Shown: positions 3,705 through 22,312, counted from the stretch's first letter. The stretch: 64,000 nt of DNA from Hemiscyllium ocellatum (GCF_020745735.1 NC_083407.1:68377857-68441856), one strand, 5' to 3'. Translations and numbers: made by a program. Notes: generated from the sequence alone by a model not told the origin.

Positions 3705-4658
3705 ATGAGTTCATATTTTGTTAATCCATTCTACTCCAAGTACAAACCAGGAGAAGCTCTGAGTCCCACTTACTACGACTGCCGGTTTCCACAAGACGTG
3801 ACCAGCAGACACGCTGTCGTCTATGGTCCCAGCAGCGGCGCAAGCTTCCAGCACCCAGCTCAAGTTCAAGATTTTTACCATCATGGGACATCTGCACTTC
3901 CTAATGCTGGCTTTCAACAGAATCCTTGTGGAATTACGTGTCATGGTGACCCCTCTAAATTTTACGGATACGATAACTTACAAAGACAGCAAATTTTTAC
4001 GACACAGCAAGAGGCCGATCTGGTACAATATCCTGACTGTAAATCGTCTAGCAGTAATATTGGCGAAGAACCAGAACACTTAAATCAGAACTCGTCTCCT
4101 ACTCAAATGTTTCCCTGGATGAGACCTCAAGGTTGGATATATTAGAATTAGCTTCCATCTCACGTTTTACTGCACAGTTATATCGCCAACGTGTTTTAAC
4201 GCGGTCTGTAATAGTCTTGTCTGCTTTTATAGCAACACTTTCTTTGTATGGCATTACCGTTCAAAAGCAGGCTTGTTGTTGTTCTTGTTGCTAGTCTGTC
4301 ATGATTTGCTTGTGTGCAATTTTCCAATATTTACTGTCTCTTGTGATTCTCGTGTTGTTTAGCAGCGCCCGGCAGACGCAGAGGAAGACAAACTTACAGC
4401 CGATTCCAAACCCTGGAGCTGGAAAAGGAATTTCTGTTCAATCCGTATCTGACACGAAAGCGAAGGATCGAGGTTTCACATGCTCTGGGACTGACAGAGA
4501 GGCAGGTGAAGATTTGGTTTCAAAATAGGAGAATGAAGTGGAAAAAGGAAAACAACAAGGACAAATTTCCAAGCTCTCGGAACGACGAGGAGGAGGAAGA
4601 GGTCAAAAAAGAACAGGAAGAGCCTGAGCAGGAGACAACAGAAAAAGAGACCAAGTAA
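3705..4658 (+). CDS. HOXD8: Homeobox protein Hox-D8; exon 1 3705-4131, exon 2 4363-4658 (alternative acceptor 4366); about 240 aa
   Basis: [14 protein letters not shown] start; FPWMRPQ hexapeptide; GT donor 4132; TAG/CAG acceptor; PG8 homeodomain [60 protein letters not shown] followed by NKDKFP and an acidic tail; TAA 4656-4658. The exon 2 coding frame is missing from the ORF track. Confidence 0.96.
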
Positions 4659-5049
4659 CTTTACCCCCTTTGGCCTCTAAGCAAAACGTCATTCAGTTTG
4701 TCCAAACTGCACTGTTAAACAGTGGTGAACAGAATGAATCTCCGGCACATTGATGGCAAGGTTAATGTAAACTGTCCACCTGTTTTTTTTAAAGTTCTTT
4801 AGAGCCTTAATTCGACATTATATCTCATGAATTCTCTGTGCATCATTTTGAACTTTTCAATCACACCTTGACAGATCAGCCATCATATAGAAATGTGCGG
4901 CTTCCCTTATTATAAGTGGCAAGTGGCAAAATCACAGAAGAAATCGCCATTTTGAATAAAGATTTTATTGCTTTTTAATACGTCGATAATATGAGATGGT
5001 ATCGTGATTGATTTAGTTTGTTGATTTTATTTAGCATTTTGTGATTATA

Positions 5050-5070
5050 CCCAACAACATGAACTGCCTA
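5050..5070 (+). promoter_or_regulatory. miR-196 target site in the HoxD8 3' UTR
   Basis: CCCAACAACATGAACTGCCTA is complementary to miR-196a (UAGGUAGUUUCAUGUUGUUGGG) with one G:U pair and a 1-nt bulge; same site type as in HOXB8. Confidence 0.9.
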
Positions 5071-5673
5071 ATAGAATGAATAATTCGGAATGTATTGCGA
5101 ACACACTTAATGATAGAGAAAAAAATGTGCACTTACGATGTGTCTTAATTACTGTGCGTGTGAAATAATTGGTGGTGTATTGCGGCTGGAAATTCTCAAC
5201 CATTACTTATCTCTGATACGCATATTATAAACACAAGCAAAAAAAATGTCAAGGTATTCCGCAGCAATAGTCACTTTTTAAGATGCTCGAATGTGATTAA
5301 ATTAATAAATGTTGATTAAATTTAATTGTGTACTTGTTTCATTTTCCGACGAGTATTCCAAAGCAACAAAAATGCTGTAAAGGAAAATCAATCTGGTCAT
5401 TTCGAGACCATCAGCAGAGATCACTGGTTTACCCTCTTGCCAGTTTTCTGCGGCTGCTTCTAGGCTGCTACTTTCCAGTGAAATCAGATGCACTTTATTT
5501 TTGTTTCTGTGTCTCTGTAGCCACAAGGTTCAGGCCTGTCATACAGCAGCGCGGCAGTTACATGGACGGAAAAGCCTGAAGATGGCGTAATGTAGTTATA
5601 AAAGTTAATGATATCGTCGATGATTAGAATATTAGTTTATCTATGCCCCAAGTTAAAAGTCTTTCCAGTGACT

Positions 5674-6918
5674 ATTGGTTAATGAGATCACATGCCTGGC
5701 TTATGTGTGGCTAAGCCGACGCTGTAAAAGTTAGTATTGGTGTTAAACTGCGGTCTACTGTACGCGTGTATCAGCAAATCTCGTAAAACCGACAATAAAA
5801 GTTCTAACACTACAAATCACTCAACAAACTGTGGACTTCTGGCTCCATTTTATTTTTCTCTGGTTTGAAGGCTGGGGAAGAAAGCAACATCTTTGGTTGC
5901 CTAATAACCTTCCAACATTTCGCGAATTTTTTTCCTTTATCAGCAATTACGCCAATTTAAATGTCAATAATATCAGTGGGCACGTTGCTTATAAACTTCA
6001 ACCTTAAGAATCGGGAATTTCGAATCTCCACCTTTGCGCAGGGAGATGAACAGCATGGCCAATCTGAAACAATAAAGACAAATTGATAAGAACAAACAGG
6101 AAACAATTAGAGGGGAAAATGCAAACGTTGTGTTTCAAATGTGAACAAACAATTAAAAGACCTTGTTTATTTTTAAAACTAAAAATAGCACTCTGCATTT
6201 TGTGGCGAGTTCGAGAATCCACTGAGATAATACAAACATCTCTGATTTTCGAAACAACTTCAGACTTGTAATTGAATGGAATTCTCTGTGTTAATAACTC
6301 AAAGTCATACGACCGCAATATCCTCACTGTATCAGGTATAGTCAGATATGAAGCAACAATTAATTAATTGAAGATAGAGATTTGAGCAGTTGGGGAATCC
6401 CAGTTTTGGAGCTGTATATTGGTAATTTTACACATTTGAATGTTAATTGCATTATGTTTTATTTTAATGCAAATAAAATTTGTATCCTATTTTAAATAGC
6501 AAACTAGCTATCCGATTGCAATATAGCAATCATTTTACAGAATAAATCGACTCTAAATAAATTGGAACAGACTTATTTTTAATTGCATTTTCGAACAGGA
6601 GAGGATCATATTTGTCCAAAATTAAGTATTTCTTGACTGTCTTTCACATATTACCAGGATTGTTTTAAATGTGTGCATGATTTTTCTACGATGTTCAATT
6701 TCATCAAAAAACCACAAATTTTGAAGTTCAACAAATCAGTGTGAAACAGGCTATATATGTATATTTTTAAATGCTATTCTGCATTTGCTCCAATTGCAAA
6801 TTGAATCATCAAATCCCCATACCAGCGATCAGGAAGGGATTGTACAATGACGGTAGAACGGGTCTTATCAAGTATTTAGATTAGCAAAGAAGAATCGCAA
6901 GTTTTCACTGAACGAATT
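5674..6918 (+). pseudogene. Putative decayed HoxD7 (promoter, 5' UTR, ATG>GTG at 5831, donor 6336, homeobox fragments 6827-6918)
   Basis: 5737-5833 closely follows the HOXB7-type 5' UTR (AATCTCGTAAAACCGACA.TAAAA...CTACAAATCA...CAAA.T-ATG) as recalled. 6873-6899 reads YLD*QRRIA versus YLTRRRRIE, and 6907-6918 reads TERI versus TERQI. Lies in the collinear position. Confidence 0.7.
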
Positions 6919-8184
6919 GTGCACACAATGGCGAGGCTTGTGGGTGGAATTAATACTTTGAAACGGGCATTGCTTCTGAATTGTTGCTTACAATTCCCGG
7001 TCAATTTGGGTCTCGAATAAAATCGCTATCGAAATTCCTCCCCCATCCAGTCTCCAAACCCAGAAAGACTTTTCCAGTTGTCCTGTTGAAAGTTTTATTA
7101 ATAATGCATGTTATTTTGATGTAACCTTGATAATAGTCTTATCATTTTCATAAATTAAAAATGAGAACTCGTCCCGATTCTGGTGATACCGTTTTGGATT
7201 TTCACCGTAAGATCACTTCAAAACACCGCAGCAAAGACAGCCTCGTGCTAGCCCTTCTCTAGAGTTAAATCAGCGGTAAGCATGGGATAATAGAGAAACT
7301 TGGAAAGCAAATATCTAGCAGACATGCTTTCCTTCTAATGCTCGAAGTTCCCGTGCATGCAACACGGTGAAACCGTAATTACCGAACCCGCTCACGGACA
7401 TTGAAGGAAAAATATACCGAACCAACTGATTCAAATGCTTGCATTCACGCCTAATCTGTTAACGCAGCGCCGAAGCTATTTTAGCCGATTAAGCCAAATC
7501 TTATGAAGCACGAGAATTTATAATGCCCATTTTCTCCCCACAGTGGACACACGAGGACTTTAATGCCGTGCTCCATGTCATTCGGCCCCTACATATGCAT
7601 CTATTTACTGTTCTGTTCTGACCTGTGCAAAATGCATCGTACAAAGCTTCGAATAAGATACAACTTTCCTTGAGATTTTGATTGTTATTGGAAGGAAGGA
7701 CGGAAGGCGCCGCAGTTTTGTTGCGTATTTTACAGACGCTTTTGCTTAGTTTATTTTGCTTTCTACTTTTAATTAGATCTTATTGAATGGAATGAGAAAG
7801 TCGGGAGGAAACGAAAATAAGTTTTCTAATACGTAACTGGCAGCAGTATATATTCTTGGTATTACCGCTTTATTATGTTTTTGACGAGATTTAATTTCAA
7901 AAATGCCCATGTCTTCACTTGATACATCTATTGGATGTATTAAAGAAGTAGCGATTAACAAACAAATTGTAACGATTTGTTTGCTGCACTATAGAATGCG
8001 CCCCGCATTGGTTGATATTCCACTTGATGTTGTCGCGGTATTTCCGCTGATATAGTTAGTTAAGACGTTCGTTACAATACATATTGTAACAAATAGCTGT
8101 AGCAAAGAACTCGTTAAAGGGAACATGGCGCTTGCTAGCTATACTTGTGAAATCCGCAAGGAATTGCTGCGAATTCCTTTTTGT

Positions 8185-8290
8185 TTGAAGAAAATTTACA
8201 ACTTTGTAATGGACCTTTTACGACGGAGCCCGTGATCCTATTGGCTGACATTGGTCATGTGAATCTAGTAACTGCGTTCATGGCCTTTTC
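8185..8290 (+). promoter_or_regulatory. Conserved Hox8/7-6 intergenic element (resembles the four-cluster sequence); probable promoter of a non-coding first exon ending at donor 8658
   Basis: TTTACAACTTTGTAATGGACCTTTTACGAC, inverted CCAAT at 8240, E-box CATGTG at 8256; GG|GTAAGT donor at 8658. Confidence 0.65.
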
Positions 8291-11200
8291 ATGATTTCCC
8301 TTGTGAATATTTCACTGCATTCCGCTGCTAACTCGTCTCAAATCGTCTTTTCTGTCAGTATCTCCTCTTGCCTGCTTTTGTCGTTGGTATTTGACGCCAG
8401 CTGCTTGCAAAAAAAGGAGACTTTCTGCTGTATTCGCAGTGTCCAGTCCTTTTCCGTACAACTGTGAGGAAGTCATTCGTCTCATGCTGGGATTCAGCAA
8501 CCTAATCACTCTCACAGAGCTCTGACGTCTGTTTACAGTCTTCCATTTACCCTTCAATTTTCGCCTTACCTTTTTCAAGTTATTTTATTGATCGAAAAAG
8601 TAGAAATGGAATACAATATCAGGCTGGTGACTGTATTGGGGAAGCGCCCTAACCCGGGTAAGTGCTATGCTGTTTTAGCTCTGCTGTTGCAAATCATATT
8701 GCTGTAAATGGAAAGCCGGAAAAAGGCGTTTGTTTCATTCGCTGGATTCTGGGGAACTGTTTCTGAGATGGTGCGCTATTGAAGCTAAATGACCCCAGCA
8801 CGGGTTTGAAAACGGTCCGAACGAAGCAGGTCCAGGTGGTCACTGGAATTCATATGGCGGCTGTGGCGCAGATTAATTAAATATTTATTTCCCGCAATAG
8901 AACGGAGTGCTATGATTCGTGGCTGTCTTTGAAATGAAGGCTTCGCCACACACAGCTGATATGTTTTCATATGATCCAGAGCAGAGATGAATCAGAATGT
9001 GTAGCGTTGTAGTAGGATAATTAGTAGTGCTATTGCAAATTGCGCGACTTGGGTTTTTTTTTCCGGGAGCTAATGATTGGCGGTTTCAGTTTGTTTCTGT
9101 CTGCTATTTTGCATACAAGGATATGTGTTGAACGTCATCTGTAATAAGAATTAGGTGCAGAGATGAATGATATGCATTGCCTTAATCCTAATAATTCCGT
9201 GCAGCAATCACAGAAGCGATCAGAATTTTGGAGATGTGTTTAACCAGCATTTTAAATGATGTCTGACCACGTGACGGAACTTTGCACAAATGAGTGATAC
9301 TCTTCCAATAAGTGCCCTGCAATAGATAGCGGACTGTGCTCTCAATATACTTGTAATGAACAGGGGATCAGGAAAAATTTCTAACTGCGTCTATATTTGC
9401 AATGTTTAAAATATTAGCAGCTCAACCATCCGGTGATTAATTTCCCGCAAGTTGTCCCCAAATTGGATAGCACATTTTATTAAAACTGTAGGGTCTTCAT
9501 GCGGGAAATGTTTTTAGTTCGGAACCAACAGCTCCAGTCCATGTTAAGTGAATTCACAATGCAAAACAGAATGATCACCAAAAATCGTGGAATTCCTTTA
9601 CTTTGTTGTGGAAGTTTTTCTCATTATTAGCGATTTAACTGCAAAATCTTGCTGCAGACGTATACCTAGAAAGGTGGAAGGGGGTGGTTGTGTGTGCGAG
9701 ATATTGTCATCAGGAGATGAGCTGATCATATATCATTTCTGCAATTTCCCTCGGCAATTATTTGTATGTATTTTTTCCAATTATTAAATATTCGGAGAGG
9801 ATTGCTTAAATTGTTTTTGACTGTACATCAAAATTGCACTCATTTGAAATGTATGCTTATATTCATAATTTGAAAATTGATTTGTCTTTCAATCTTCTTT
9901 TAGTGAAAACGGATTAAACGACTATAGTTTGACCATCCATTTTGTGCATAGTTATAGCGATCTTGATTTGTTGTGCATCTGTCGCCTATTTGTATATGAA
10001 AATAGTATTAAACACCGAACAAAATGTCTGTCTATCTATCTAACGTATGGACCAACAGACATATTGTGAAAGTGAAAGCGAGGCTGTTCAAAATGAAGCT
10101 AGAATCAAAGAGTGTGCATCGATAGCGTAACATGCGCAATTTCATCATAGTCTTTATAACGTTGTGAATGTTTCTATATTAAGTATTGACGTTTTTTAGT
10201 CAAAACTCACAAACAGCAATGTACGTGCACTCGAATTCTATCAGTTTTGAAGTTTTAGTATTATTTTAGCTATTGGCAAAGCACTTGCAGGTTTACCCTA
10301 ATTTTCAAGCAATATTTGACAGTAATTCTGTTCATAATACCTTTTGTTTAATTCTCAATGCATCGCCCATCTTCATTCCAATTTGTCAGGCAATTATTTT
10401 ACAGACTTTGAAAATCAAGCATTATTTGCCTCCATTAAATAATTAAATGAGATAAGGTTGTTCAGGTATAATTTTCGTTAAAATAAAGCTGATTTTTCGG
10501 AGTTACGTGACTATTACACTCTGCACTTTTTACAATGTATGAACAGACTGAAAAGTGATTTCGCAGATTTTTCTTAATCATTCGTAATTTAGCATGAACA
10601 CATGGAAAAAGAAAACTGAGCAACAGTAATGTCACTGTAATTAAAATTACCAGAAAGCGGATATTTGTTATTCAGTTCATTTTCTAGTTTTAGAATCGAA
10701 TTATTTAATTTTTGTTATTATGCGTCATGTCGTCGTGGTTTTGCTAAACCGACTAAAGTACGCAACAGGCACCGTTGTATCTGTCTCTGTGTGTATACCT
10801 ATGTGTGTGTGAATATCTGCCTATCTGTTCGCTTGTATGTGTAATTCATACTAAGTGTCCAATTGTGCATTTAGAAACGCTACCCGAAAAAGTTTTGCTC
10901 ATATTACATCTTCGGTACCAGCCATGCTCAAAAATAATTTCCAAATGATTTCAGCATAATAGCAAAATATTAGAATCAATAATTTCAATGAAACATGTTT
11001 CATTTAACTTCTGCAACAAAAGGTGGTCTGATTCCCAATGCCAGTTCGCATTAAACCATTTATTGCACTGCTTTTATATTGGCATCTCGTTGTGAAAGTA
11101 AGTAAATCTTAATGCAAACACTTCGCACAGATTCGAGGGAAATGGTCTATTGCAATCTCAAAGACAATTCGATCCTCGTAGTTTTGGCAAACCAACGAAT

Positions 11201-12313
11201 TTCCAGAACGCGATCTTCTAAATTTTGTCATAAGGGAGACGCACTGGAAAATGACAATCAACAAAAATGAATTAGTATGTGATGCACGCAATAATTTATA
11301 CTTTCCATTGTCAGAGCATAATTCACAATCGTGCCTGGTGAAAGGGTAAAATATTTGACTGTTGGGTATTCTATTTCAAAAGTTTCAAGAGTACAAATAT
11401 TCGGTAAAGTAGAAAAAAAATCGTTGTAGTCAGCAGCAAAAAGCCATTCTATTCCATAACGTGTACTGTAAGAACGGCCTGATTTGTTAGTGCAGGACAA
11501 AGACAGTATTTCTGTTACCGACTGTCACATGGCTGCCGCAGCCTTAGATTTACGAGCTTTAGACAGAGTCAGTTGGACAGTGTCGCAACTCTGTTCTTCG
11601 AACAGAATTGCAAGGGTGCACAAATCAAACTTCACAAAGGATAAATAAAACCATCCCCATAGTCTGGCATTTTATTTAAAATGCACTTGTTAAAATATTA
11701 TATTTTGACTTCTTAAGCTATAAATTGTAATCCATGATTGATCTGGAATCAATGCACTTTTAATGAAGGCCTATGCAGTTCCACCTTGAAACCGGGGCCT
11801 AGAATAAATACCTGGGGTCTTTGTGGGTTGATGTTGTATCCTGGCATGGATTGCACGGGCTGTGATTACAAACTACAATAATATTTCCATTGAAACTTGC
11901 TTAGACTTCAATTAATTGGTAATACTTTAGCCCTTCAATTCTTAAAAGCTCGGGTGTAATAAGTAAAAGTAACTCAATTCTCCAGCGCTGCAAGTTGTCA
12001 GGGTAAATAACATCTAAATGTTCCTGCGATAGAAAGGAAATCAAATTCTGTACGGTTTTGTATGAGAAACTAGTATGTGTGGGTGGGGCGGTCAAAACAT
12101 AAACCCGAAGAACCCTATTTTGTTGCTAACCGATGCACTGACTAATCTGTAGGAACACCCTTTTTTTGCCAAGAAAAAGAAACAAAGCATTGATGTACTC
12201 CACCTGTTTGAAAGATTACTGCCATTCTGAGCGGATCTTTGTAAGAAGTCCTGCAAGGCCCGCATTATCACGGTCGATGTTTGACACCTTTGTCCTTCAT
12301 TATCAACTCCTTT

Positions 12314-13152
12314 ACAAATCGCAATCTAAAATTTATACGCAGCCTATTCGTCAAACCGAAAAAGAAAAATCTTGATTACAAATACTGCATTTATTTCTCG
12401 GTTCGTTTCCTTGCCGTTCTGGCTGGTTCAGATTGTTTGGATCTGCGTGGCAGAGAACGATAACAGAGCAAAATTGGAGCCTACACGATATCATTTGGAA
12501 ATCTGTATATATTTACCCGAAGGCCATCTTTCCACAATTAAATTTGTTTTAATTCCATCAGCACCTACACAGGATTATGCATCAGGTATCAGAGTTTTAG
12601 ATATATGCCTCCATCTAAGTAAAACATAGATTGTACAAGGGACAACTGTAGTAACGTTCACGAGGAATTCCGCGGCGAAAATAGAAATAAACCCTATACC
12701 ACGCCCGCTTAGCTTCTTAGTCGATTCTGGTTGGTTTCAGGGTCGACTTAACCAGTCACAAAATAAAATACCATGTTGGTCTGTTTCTTTTTAAAAAAAA
12801 GATCCCCAATCATAACAGACAACACACAATTATCCAGAAACAGGAATTTCATGGGCAAATTGTGGGATTGCCTGGACAAACTAATGGGAAACTTTGTGAA
12901 TGCGCAGTGTATGTAGATATCAACGTAATGTGGAAATAGCTGTGCGCTGTGTTCTACGAAAACGACATTGTAATCGTTATAGGTGTTGAAACCCGGGCTG
13001 TGTGTGTAAGTGAGGGAAGGCTGCCTCTGTATCCTATACAGGGATAAGCTGTCTTTCAGGAAAACGAACTTTCCCTAAATTGTTGCCTAAAAGGAAGAGA
13101 AGTTAAACATCCTAAACCTTGGACTAAAAATCAGAGTCGGATATCGAGAAGA
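12314..13152 (+). pseudogene. Putative decayed HoxD6 (start remnant 12337-12358; linker and homeobox remnant 12997-13152)
   Basis: ACAAATC...ACGCAGCCTATTCGTCAAACCG resembles ACAAATC...ATGAGTTCCTATTTCGTCAACCCG (MSSYFVNP). 12997-13024 reads AVCVSEG..GC versus HoxA6 AVYGSHGRRGR. 13060-13146 reads ENELSLNCCLKGR---EVKHPKPWTKNQSRIS versus [32 protein letters not shown]. Confidence 0.7.
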
Positions 13153-13675
13153 TTTACTTGTTATTTATTTCCATTTATGCAGTTCGCCACAAGCAAATCA
13201 TTCTTTTCAACCAACATCAAGCTAAAGGATTAAATACATGATTAATACGAAATAAACGTTTTAAATTGAATTGAATTTAAAACGTTAATTGTGTTACAAA
13301 ATATTTTGAATTATTAAGGTGTAATGCTGAATAACAAACGGATCAGATCAACGTCTGTAGTTTCTTAATATTGTACCTATCGTCAGCACAAACCAATTCC
13401 ACAAATTACTTTACATATGCATTATACACAAACCTATACACTTACAAACTTACTAAACAGGAAATTTTTACTCGCATACACATTTTGTGTCTGTGTTCCT
13501 GTATATGTCGTCAGTTAAATAAAATCGAATTTCAGGTAACAGAAATCAGCTTTCATACCCAAGGTTTAACAGGGTTTTAAGTGTGAACCATTTTACAAAT
13601 AAACCTATATGGAAAATAGGTTGCAAAGTGTGAACCTATATAAAGTGCTGATGTGAATCTGGCTTTCCTCATGTT

Positions 13676-13694
13676 TGCCAGCAGGGGGCGCTAC
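13676..13694 (+). promoter_or_regulatory. CTCF site at the Hox5|6 boundary position
   Basis: TGCCAGCAGGGGGCGCTAC is a consensus CTCF motif about 250 bp upstream of the HoxD5 ATG. Confidence 0.85.
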
Positions 13695-13729
13695 AGGATC
13701 ATGCTGGCTAAATCATAGCAAGTATTCTC

Positions 13730-13830
13730 ACTGCATGAATTACCCCCAGGGTCAGGCACAAGAATTTACGACTGGTCAACAAAAGCACGTGATCTAAACT
13801 TGTGCCCCATATTTGGTTGCATACGTAGAA
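13730..13830 (+). promoter_or_regulatory. Conserved paralogue-5 proximal promoter
   Basis: GAATTACC...AATTTACGACTGGTCAACAAAAGCACGTGAT block typical of Hox5 promoters; E-box 13786-13791; CArG-type CCATATTTGG 13807-13816. Confidence 0.75.
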
Positions 13831-13937
13831 AGCAGAGAAATGACATGTGCCTTTTATTTCCATATTTCATTATATATCGCTCGGTCTAGTGCCGAATAAA
13901 CGTCTAAGAACCACAAATCAAAACCCGTTAAAGGCAG

Positions 13938-15060
<1,123 letters not shown>

Positions 15061-16584
15061 CCTGTTTCATCCTAATTCTGGCTATACAATATTACTGTCC
15101 AGATGATCTTTTAAGTTGCAATAGGAAAGGTTGTTTGGCCACATTAGGTACTCCTCTATGAGATGCGTTTATTAATACGTTGTTCTCATATGGGTACAAC
15201 GTCTTGCTATCAATTTACCAAGAAAAGAATACAATTTATCAGTTGTCACCAACAGATGTTAAATCATGTTTTTATACATTGATGGTAATGGCCATGCCTA
15301 AATTTAGATTATAAGAGAAAGAGCGAGAAAGGGGTCAAACGACTTAATGTAGCCAAGCAAGCCATTTATCTCTTGAGAACAGAATGAAGTTGTGCTGTAT
15401 ATCTGGTTTCTGAACAAACGAATCCCATACCGGAATAGAGCTTCGCTAAGATTTTAAATTAATAATATTTTATAAACTTAGATGAATATTGTTCCTGTCA
15501 TCTCTTTTTACATCAAACTTTCTTTTGTTTGATTTTGCCTTGGAATGTTTATGGCACGAGTGTTGCTGTGGTCCCAGGTATATATGTCTTGTATATTCTG
15601 TACAGATATAATGTCTGAATGTCTGACTTTGTCCTATGTACATGAAATAAGTGAGTTTCTTTTTGCCTACATTGAAATAAAGTCAGTTTTATCAATAAAT
15701 ATTTCACCTGGCGTTTGAACTCTAATGATGTGTAAAAAGGCGGACAATTGGTTTCTTGTGAAAAGACAAAAAGCCATTCACTTTCTCATTTTACACCTAT
15801 TCGGTTTGACACCCAAGTTCTCCGAACACTAGCCCCAATGCTTCAGAACTCATAAAAGTTCCTTGGGTTGAACCGTCTTTCAATTTTTTCTGAATTAGAA
15901 AAAAACATTATTGTTGGCAAGAACTGATGGTCGAGTTCATACTATTCCAATAACTTTATTTAATTAAAGAATATGACTCATACTTCAGAAACTCGGCAGC
16001 TCGACTACAAACACGTCAAATGTCCAAAGATAATTTCACAGATTTTACTGAATGGAAGAATAATTCGAGTTTGTTTTTATTAATGGATGTTGACATAAAT
16101 ACTTAGGAAAGTGATGCCGCAATTTATAGGACGTATTGCATAAATTATGTTACTTATAAGAAGGATTTGCAGCAGTATCCATTGCATAGAATAATTTTCC
16201 ATGCTAACTTTTCTGAGAATATTTGTGTTCCGAAAAGCAGAAGGAAATAATAAGCCGTCGAAGCGACAGAAATAGGGAAACAAAGTCATAGGTAGCAGCA
16301 ACTGTAAAAAGACTTGTTTCTCCATTCTCAGTCCACCTATATCTATTTCACTGTAAGTTAGAAGCTATCAGTCACGTATATTTGTAGGGTATTTGCACTT
16401 ACCAAATCGTCTAGATCCCCTTGGCTGCATAAGAACTACTGTCCATATTGCGTATTAAAGTAAGGGCAGCTTATTCTCCAAGGCACGCTTCGTCTGGGTG
16501 CTCAGACGTTTGGCTTTATATTAGTGGGAGAGCATTTCGATGAACCTGACTGTCTTTAGTGAATAAAAGTTTTAAAGTTTAAGG

Positions 16585-22230: not shown

Positions 22231-22312
22231 GTCGTCTATATATACCCTGTAGAACCGAATTTGTGTGATGTTTCGGTCACAGATTCGTTTCTAGGGGAGT
22301 CTATGGTCGATG
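22231..22312 (+). ncRNA. MIR10B: pre-miR-10 (miR-10b type); 5p mature 22243-22265, 3p about 22279-22300
   Basis: TACCCTGTAGAACCGAATTTGTG is exactly miR-10b-5p; complementary arm ACAGATTCGTTTCTAGGGGAGT; canonical position 5' of Hox4. Confidence 0.97.

Follow-up and report, generated by a model that had tools for sequence, protein, structure and literature searches.

Between HoxD8 and HoxD5 of the shark Hemiscyllium ocellatum lies a short conserved element (5672-5833, plus strand) that is very probably what remains of HoxD7, namely its proximal promoter and 5' UTR, kept in cartilaginous fishes by purifying selection that predates the split of chimaera and elasmobranchs, while the coding exons were erased. 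We know of no HoxD7 in any jawed vertebrate, and HoxC7 is likewise missing from the known gnathostome gene set. Coordinates are those of the window, the whole stretch of 64,000 nucleotides that was analysed. The element, referred to here as the ghost, is found 1.17 kb past the HoxD8 stop, close to the figure of about 1 kb given by the initial annotation, and 8.1 kb ahead of the HoxD5 ATG. That annotation had proposed a PG7 promoter and 5' UTR under constraint in the HoxD7 slot, followed by recognisable eroded coding parts. The first proposal was borne out by a PG7-specific match conserved in sharks, skates and chimaera and the second was not, and on sequence evidence the ghost is a real promoter/leader relic rather than a recognisable pseudogene.

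The window contains six homeoboxes, all on the plus strand (Hox8, 5, 4, 3, 2 and 1). The Hox8 gene was located by its homeobox and first exon at 3705-4658, with the stop at about 4656-4658, and the Hox5 gene in the same way at 13938-15060, also on the plus strand. The first exon of Hox8 is 97% identical to shark and ray proteins named Hox-D8, and that of Hox5 matched only cartilaginous-fish proteins named Hox-D5. From this order and these best matches we identify the window as a shark HoxD cluster with an 8-5-4-3-2-1 gene content, which is the known arrangement in cartilaginous fishes. HoxD2, D5 and D14 are confined to this group (PMC5054437). A mir-10 precursor was also detected on the plus strand upstream of HoxD4 (22236-22307; Rfam 69.5 bits, E 1.7e-15), in the place expected for mir-10b.

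All parts of the ghost are described on the plus strand. The promoter homologue (5674-5736) holds an inverted CCAAT box, ATTGG (5674-5678), the E-box TCACATG (5688-5694, with CACATG itself at 5689-5694) and a second E-box position (5701-5707), which reads TATGTG in the window; the remaining cartilaginous fishes have CATGTG there, and Hox7 genes have CACGTG. It is 81-88% identical among cartilaginous fishes and 48-52% identical to HoxA7, the same level as HoxA7 against HoxB7. The 5' UTR (leader) homologue (5737-5830) starts with TTGGTGTTAAACTG at 5737 and runs through TATCA, CTCGTAAAACCGACA, CAATAAA, TACAAATCAC and CAAACT. Its core CTCGTAAAACCGACA (5780-5794) is shared with Hox7 leaders; TCGTAAA (5781-5787) and, 12 nt from it, CAATAAA (5793-5799) are part of the invariant core. 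The ancestral start-codon position (5831-5833) is GTG in the window, and beyond it a tail of falling conservation (5834-6108), without similarity to Hox7, may be regulatory flanking DNA or the remainder of a first exon that is non-coding. Identity in this tail is 62-70% over +1 to +124 and then 31-63%, and the blastn blocks end at 6108 between shark and skate and at 5954 with Callorhinchus.

Upstream, a further conserved block (5559-5673) carries many TAAT/ATGATTAG-type homeodomain-like sites and is 83% identical in catshark, 75% in skate and 65% in Callorhinchus; it does not resemble the DNA upstream of Hox7 genes to a significant degree, the HoxA7 blastn alignments beginning at 5672. A YY1-like AAGATGGCG at 5579 had been listed as preceding the leader. 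It is indeed present in this block, but it is not deeply conserved: only sharks keep it, skate and chimaera lack it, and nothing equivalent precedes the three Hox7 genes. The strings quoted in the initial annotation (AAGATGGCG, ATTGG, CACATG, TTGGTGTTAAACTG, CTCGTAAAACCGACA, GTG and the 'coding' strings) were all located where it had placed them.

Since the earlier comparison relied on the HOXB7 leader as quoted in the initial annotation, we retrieved true Hox7 loci: HoxB8-HoxB7 from Chiloscyllium and Hemiscyllium, HoxB8-B7-B6 from Callorhinchus and HoxA9-A7-A6 from Heptranchias. The shark HoxB7 leader reads TTGGTGTAAATCTGG...TATATCACCGTACCTCGTAAAACCGACACTGAAACGTCCCGGCCTACAAATCACCAGCCAAATT-ATG, and the quoted version turned out to be essentially right, being matched by Chiloscyllium HoxB7, Callorhinchus HoxB7 and Heptranchias HoxA7. 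The leader core also corresponds to a published HoxB7 5' UTR primer, CTCGTAAAACCGACACTAAAACG (PMC3038165). When the 9.3 kb gap between HoxD8 and HoxD5 was compared with 4.4 kb of the HoxB7 locus by blastn (word 7), the sole significant match joined 5737-5833 to the HoxB7 leader (E 5e-8), and the remaining matches had E values of at least 0.15. Against HoxA7, 5672-5839 aligned to -167..+6 (E 2e-11). Smith-Waterman scores for the 250 nt before 5833 were 40 against HoxA7 and 32 and 27 against HoxB7, compared with a shuffled mean of about 10 (sd 1.4), equivalent to z values of 23, 16 and 12, respectively. The upstream regions of ten Hox8, Hox6, Hox5 and Hox4 genes scored at chance level (9-14, z -0.8 to 3.3).

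Profile searches gave the same result. An HMM built from three true Hox7 sequences, with no ghost included, found one match per cartilaginous-fish HoxD locus, at the promoter/leader, and no others in the 239 kb searched with nhmmer (E 1.4e-11 in the window and 1.2e-20 in Callorhinchus); conversely, the matches of a ghost-only HMM were limited to Hox7 5' ends in HoxA and HoxB loci. Both the PG7 profile and the word-7 blastn with shuffled controls had been proposed in the initial annotation, and the latter was significant for the promoter/leader only. In the multiple alignment, ATTGG, two E-boxes, TTGGTGTwAA, TATATCA, CTCGTAAAACCGACA, ACAAATCAC and the start-codon position follow one another collinearly, and among ghost, HoxA7 and HoxB7 there is little or no variation in ATTGG and in the cores of both E-boxes. 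These alignments demonstrate that the homology of 5672-5833 is PG7-specific and that it stays collinear all the way from the CCAAT box to the former start codon. ATTGG and CACATG are short and common, and a chance or convergent clustering of such transcription-factor motifs, without common descent, might be invoked for them; it has practically no prospect of accounting for a match of about 160 nt in the same order and spacing, with Hox7-only profile E values of 1e-11 to 1e-20, a single match per locus in 239 kb and none among the ten other Hox upstream regions.

The leader homologue is 67-70% identical to the HoxA7 leader and 63-68% identical to that of HoxB7, whereas HoxA7 and HoxB7 are 79-81% identical to each other. 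Because HoxA7 and HoxB7 are closer to each other than to the ghost, an old duplicate fits these values and a late copy, in which a HoxA7 or HoxB7 5' end was brought into HoxD by gene conversion or transposition, does not. Nothing specific speaks for such a copy, which was considered only since Hox leaders resemble each other, and we regard it as extremely unlikely: the ghost is about equidistant from HoxA7 and HoxB7 and farther from either than they are from one another, it occupies the orthologous position in elasmobranchs and chimaera, and its spacing after Hox8 fits the HoxB layout, which is comparable in Chiloscyllium and Callorhinchus (1.59 kb from the HoxB8 stop to HoxB7, against 1.17 kb here). 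As for an old PG7 duplicate, the ghost lies in the slot between the PG8 and PG6/5 genes, on their strand, and has a PG7-specific promoter and leader. Elsewhere in the window, at 12348-12385, TCGTCAAACCGAAA and, after 15 nt, TACAAATAC are arranged as in the PG7 leader core, at a level short of significance (E 1.9 with nhmmer and 0.29 with blastn); no second match to this exact motif was present in the catshark or skate loci.

Conservation was assessed in HoxD8 loci that included 10 kb of flanking DNA, from catsharks (three loci), skates (two loci), a gar and a frog, and in the 10 kb upstream of Callorhinchus HoxD5. The ghost was found at the equivalent place and in the same orientation in every cartilaginous fish sampled (sharks, catsharks, skates and Callorhinchus). 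In the leader homologue, shark, catshark, skate and chimaera share 79 of the 94 bases without change, and identity to the window is 95% in catshark, 90% in skate and 86% in Callorhinchus; exactly at the old start codon it falls from 86-95% to 62-70%. Between shark and skate the ghost forms a peak of 80-92% identity (5559-5858), and the rest of the gap between HoxD8 and HoxD5 is mostly unalignable between lineages. Shark and chimaera have 94.7% identity in the living HoxB7 leader, and the ghost leader, at 86-95% between lineages, changes about as slowly. These identities demonstrate strong purifying selection on the ghost in cartilaginous fishes, from which we infer that it still functions. Neither a conserved RNA fold (RNAalifold consensus of -3.85 kcal/mol with 12 pairs, mostly invariant) nor an Rfam match (4600-9000, E up to 1) was found, so the constraint lies at the level of the primary sequence, as would the inferred function.

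The wider search across lineages that had been suggested thus recovered the ghost in sharks, skates and chimaera, and not in gar. In the one gar and one frog sampled, neither motif scans nor an nhmmer search set to maximum sensitivity found it within 10 kb after HoxD8, which gives a contrast between cartilaginous fishes, which retain HoxD5 and the ghost, and the sampled gar and frog, which are without the ghost. The frog locus (Rhinophrynus dorsalis, L013 10001-17856) has its HoxD8 homeobox exon about 7 kb after exon 1, an unusually long intron for a Hox8 gene.

Downstream of the leader the picture is different, and homology and constraint both end at the old boundary between UTR and coding sequence, so a pseudogene reading is unsupported. 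The initial annotation had placed a GTG where the start codon should be. The position is right, as the homology ends there, but the GTG itself is not kept: the triplet is GTG in the window, GCG in catshark and GAA in skate, and it is ATG only in Callorhinchus, where it opens a frame of about 97 codons without likeness to Hox. In four lineages, comparison of +1 to +450 with three Hox7 first exons gave no trace of exon 1 (MSS..YY N-terminus, FRIYPWM hexapeptide, splice donor), with nucleotide z values of -1.2 to 1.7, and the first 120 nt or so past the old start contained no visible conserved splice donor. In the same four lineages, three-frame BLOSUM62 comparison of 2.2 kb with HoxB7 exons 1 and 2 gave best scores that were equalled by 36-74 of 100 shuffles, and a homeobox nhmmer profile built from 11 central homeoboxes found nothing better than E 2.2 in the 4700-13900 gap. 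Inside the window's own gap the best match of this profile was at 13058-13093 (E 18), and the search thus lends no support to a decayed homeobox kept in register at 12314-13152.

These results bear on the fuller version of the ghost gene, in which pieces of exon 1 (6314-6338, read as RIYP..SG plus donor) and of the homeobox (6823-6918, read as DRKR, YLD*QRRIA and TERI) would still be recognisable. The strings do exist, in the expected order past the leader, yet we consider this version very unlikely, given that nucleotide, protein and homeobox-profile scores in the four lineages match shuffled DNA and that the positions are not conserved. The 50-nt bin containing 6314-6338 is 62% identical in catshark and 56% in skate, which is background, and without an exon 1 signal this candidate was rejected as a chance resemblance. 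The second was rejected likewise, with no profile match and a shuffle-level protein score: 6823-6918 is 38-52% identical and falls inside 6625-7092, which cannot be aligned even between shark and catshark. The homeobox register, which had been claimed for YLD*QRRIA, is also off (42 nt from DRKR to YL where 81 are expected, and 34 nt from YL to TERQ where 51 are expected), and the best-scoring protein matches lie elsewhere.

A further alternative is that the ghost belongs to HoxD8, as an extended 3' UTR or downstream regulatory sequence, and that its likeness to Hox7 stems from an ancestral functional overlap between Hox8 3' and Hox7 5' ends and not from an independent promoter. The ghost does lie only about 200-300 nt past the HoxD8 polyadenylation region, putative RNA runs contain parts of both regions, and the end of the 3' UTR (5273-5345) is also similar to sequence immediately ahead of the HoxA7 promoter. 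Against this, an mRNA contig of skate HoxD8 stops at a point equivalent to about 5358, directly past its ATTAATAAA signal, which places the ghost outside the main HoxD8 transcript; identity dips to 56-64% (5359-5558) between the HoxD8 3' UTR peak and the ghost peak; and the homology takes in the CCAAT and E-box promoter motifs, which extend beyond transcribed sequence. On balance we judge the HoxD8 explanation unlikely, and retain that of a HoxD7 promoter and leader. The HoxD8 3' UTR (4909-5358) is itself extremely conserved, at up to 96% per 50-nt bin among shark, catshark and skate. The resemblance at its end, which includes the ATTAATAAATGTTG polyadenylation region, is to Heptranchias L010 9784-9857, 219-292 nt before the HoxA7 ATG (Smith-Waterman score 23, with shuffles reaching at most 20; blastn E 0.001). 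One possible source is the 3' end of the lost HoxA8, of which this would be a relic; another is an old element common to Hox8 3' and Hox7 5' ends. HoxB8 showed no similarity of this kind.

On the HoxD5 side of the gap there is another deeply conserved element (7963-8919), which aligns to skates, to Callorhinchus (8060-8750) and to gar (8125-8356, 74%) and carries a Hox-promoter-like cluster of ATTGG, ATTGG and CATGTG at about 8250-8272. An alternative first coding exon of HoxD5 with a GT donor was recognised within it at 8606-8659; it matches the alternative N-terminus of isoform X3 of Mustelus HoxD5 (MEYNIQLVTILGKRLEPG). In one catshark locus (L008) a gene call with a homeodomain product of 259 residues begins at 15096, a long way ahead of the HoxD5 ATG, and is presumed to be the equivalent of 8606-8659. 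We also considered the ghost as a distal HoxD5 promoter, and this candidate was weakened: as exon 8606-8659 has its own, nearer promoter-like element at about 8250, the ghost need not serve HoxD5 in this way.

With regard to function, ATTGG and the E-box are site types of NF-Y and USF-1. According to the title of Meccia et al. 2003, NF-Y, YY1, Sp1 and USF-1 reportedly regulate HOXB7 expression. PMC3976385 cites that study, and in PMC5896879 TCGTAAA and CAATAAA are given as the two optimal CDX2/HOXB13 sites. Because ATTGG and the E-boxes are kept and TCGTAAA and CAATAAA both occur in the core, we favour a Cdx/posterior-Hox-responsive promoter-proximal module as the probable identity of the ghost. 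By these motif matches, it would recruit NF-Y- and USF-type factors together with Cdx and posterior Hox proteins, and would then serve either as the start of a sense non-coding or leader transcript or as a regulatory element shared by HoxD8 and HoxD5-D3. Such a shared regulatory or transcript-start role would explain how the ghost outlived its own coding sequence. Three sequencing runs guessed to be RNA, two of them from a related species, contained 0.21-0.36 of the sampled words of 5540-6140, a hint of transcription for which HoxD8 read-through, unspliced RNA or DNA carry-over are alternatives.

Extending this idea, the Hox7 promoter/leader may have been an autonomous cis-regulatory module (a Cdx/posterior-Hox-responsive element or a sense-transcript start for the central HoxD genes) that never depended on the Hox7 protein, was needed for HoxD8 and/or HoxD5-D3 since before the split of chimaera and elasmobranchs, and was lost in bony vertebrates together with HoxD5. 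We put this forward tentatively, as a possibility that has somewhat less than an even chance of being correct. If it is true, the extreme conservation of the HOXA7/HOXB7 leader in all vertebrates would largely reflect regulatory constraint on the DNA and not translational control.

Compared with known systems, the ghost shares with the HoxA7 and HoxB7 promoters and 5' UTRs its motif order, strand and distance after Hox8. Unlike them, it lacks a downstream ORF, hexapeptide, intron signals and homeobox, the elasmobranch ghosts lack a start codon, and CAATAAA, the second Cdx/Hox13-type site, stands where HoxA7 and HoxB7 have CACTGAA. It also resembles the paralogous conserved non-coding elements of Hox clusters, of which an example is that of Matsunami et al. 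2010 (as cited in PMC3595034). These are likewise non-coding and conserved both across species and across the paralogous clusters that arose by genome duplication, and the ghost, too, is conserved above its flanks without a conserved reading frame and has significant similarity to its paralogues. In contrast to such elements, it would be the core promoter and leader of a vanished gene, and among the sampled lineages it is present only in cartilaginous fishes. The hoxb7a pseudogene of the cichlid Astatotilapia burtoni also reflects the loss of a PG7 gene from a Hox cluster, but its coding sequence is nearly intact, with one stop, and the pseudogene is only a few million years old (PMC2080641), whereas the coding sequence of the ghost is erased, only the regulatory 5' end is left, and the loss would be older than the split of chimaera and elasmobranchs.

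What appears to be new here is a paralogous conserved non-coding element that can be traced to the orphaned promoter/leader of a lost Hox gene. We found no description of the ghost in the literature on HoxD7 relics or on intergenic elements between HoxD8 and HoxD4, and an earlier mention in Ravi et al. 2009 or Kim et al. 2000 is possible. As a relic, it would be a physical trace of a former HoxD7 in the HoxD cluster, and would indicate that regulatory DNA can outlast its gene and that the constraint on a Hox 5' end is separable from that on the protein. Although small (about 300 bp), it bears on the shared regulatory elements that hold Hox clusters together. For the living HOXA7 and HOXB7 genes, it suggests that the invariant leader core containing TCGTAAA may be a response element at the level of DNA.

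Finally, the annotated start of Heptranchias HoxA7 (designated 'LOW QUALITY PROTEIN', L010 10001-10450) falls within the conserved leader, and the true MSSSYYVN ATG is at 10076. Its YPWM lies in another frame, and exon 1 therefore contains a frameshift, either in the assembly or in the gene.
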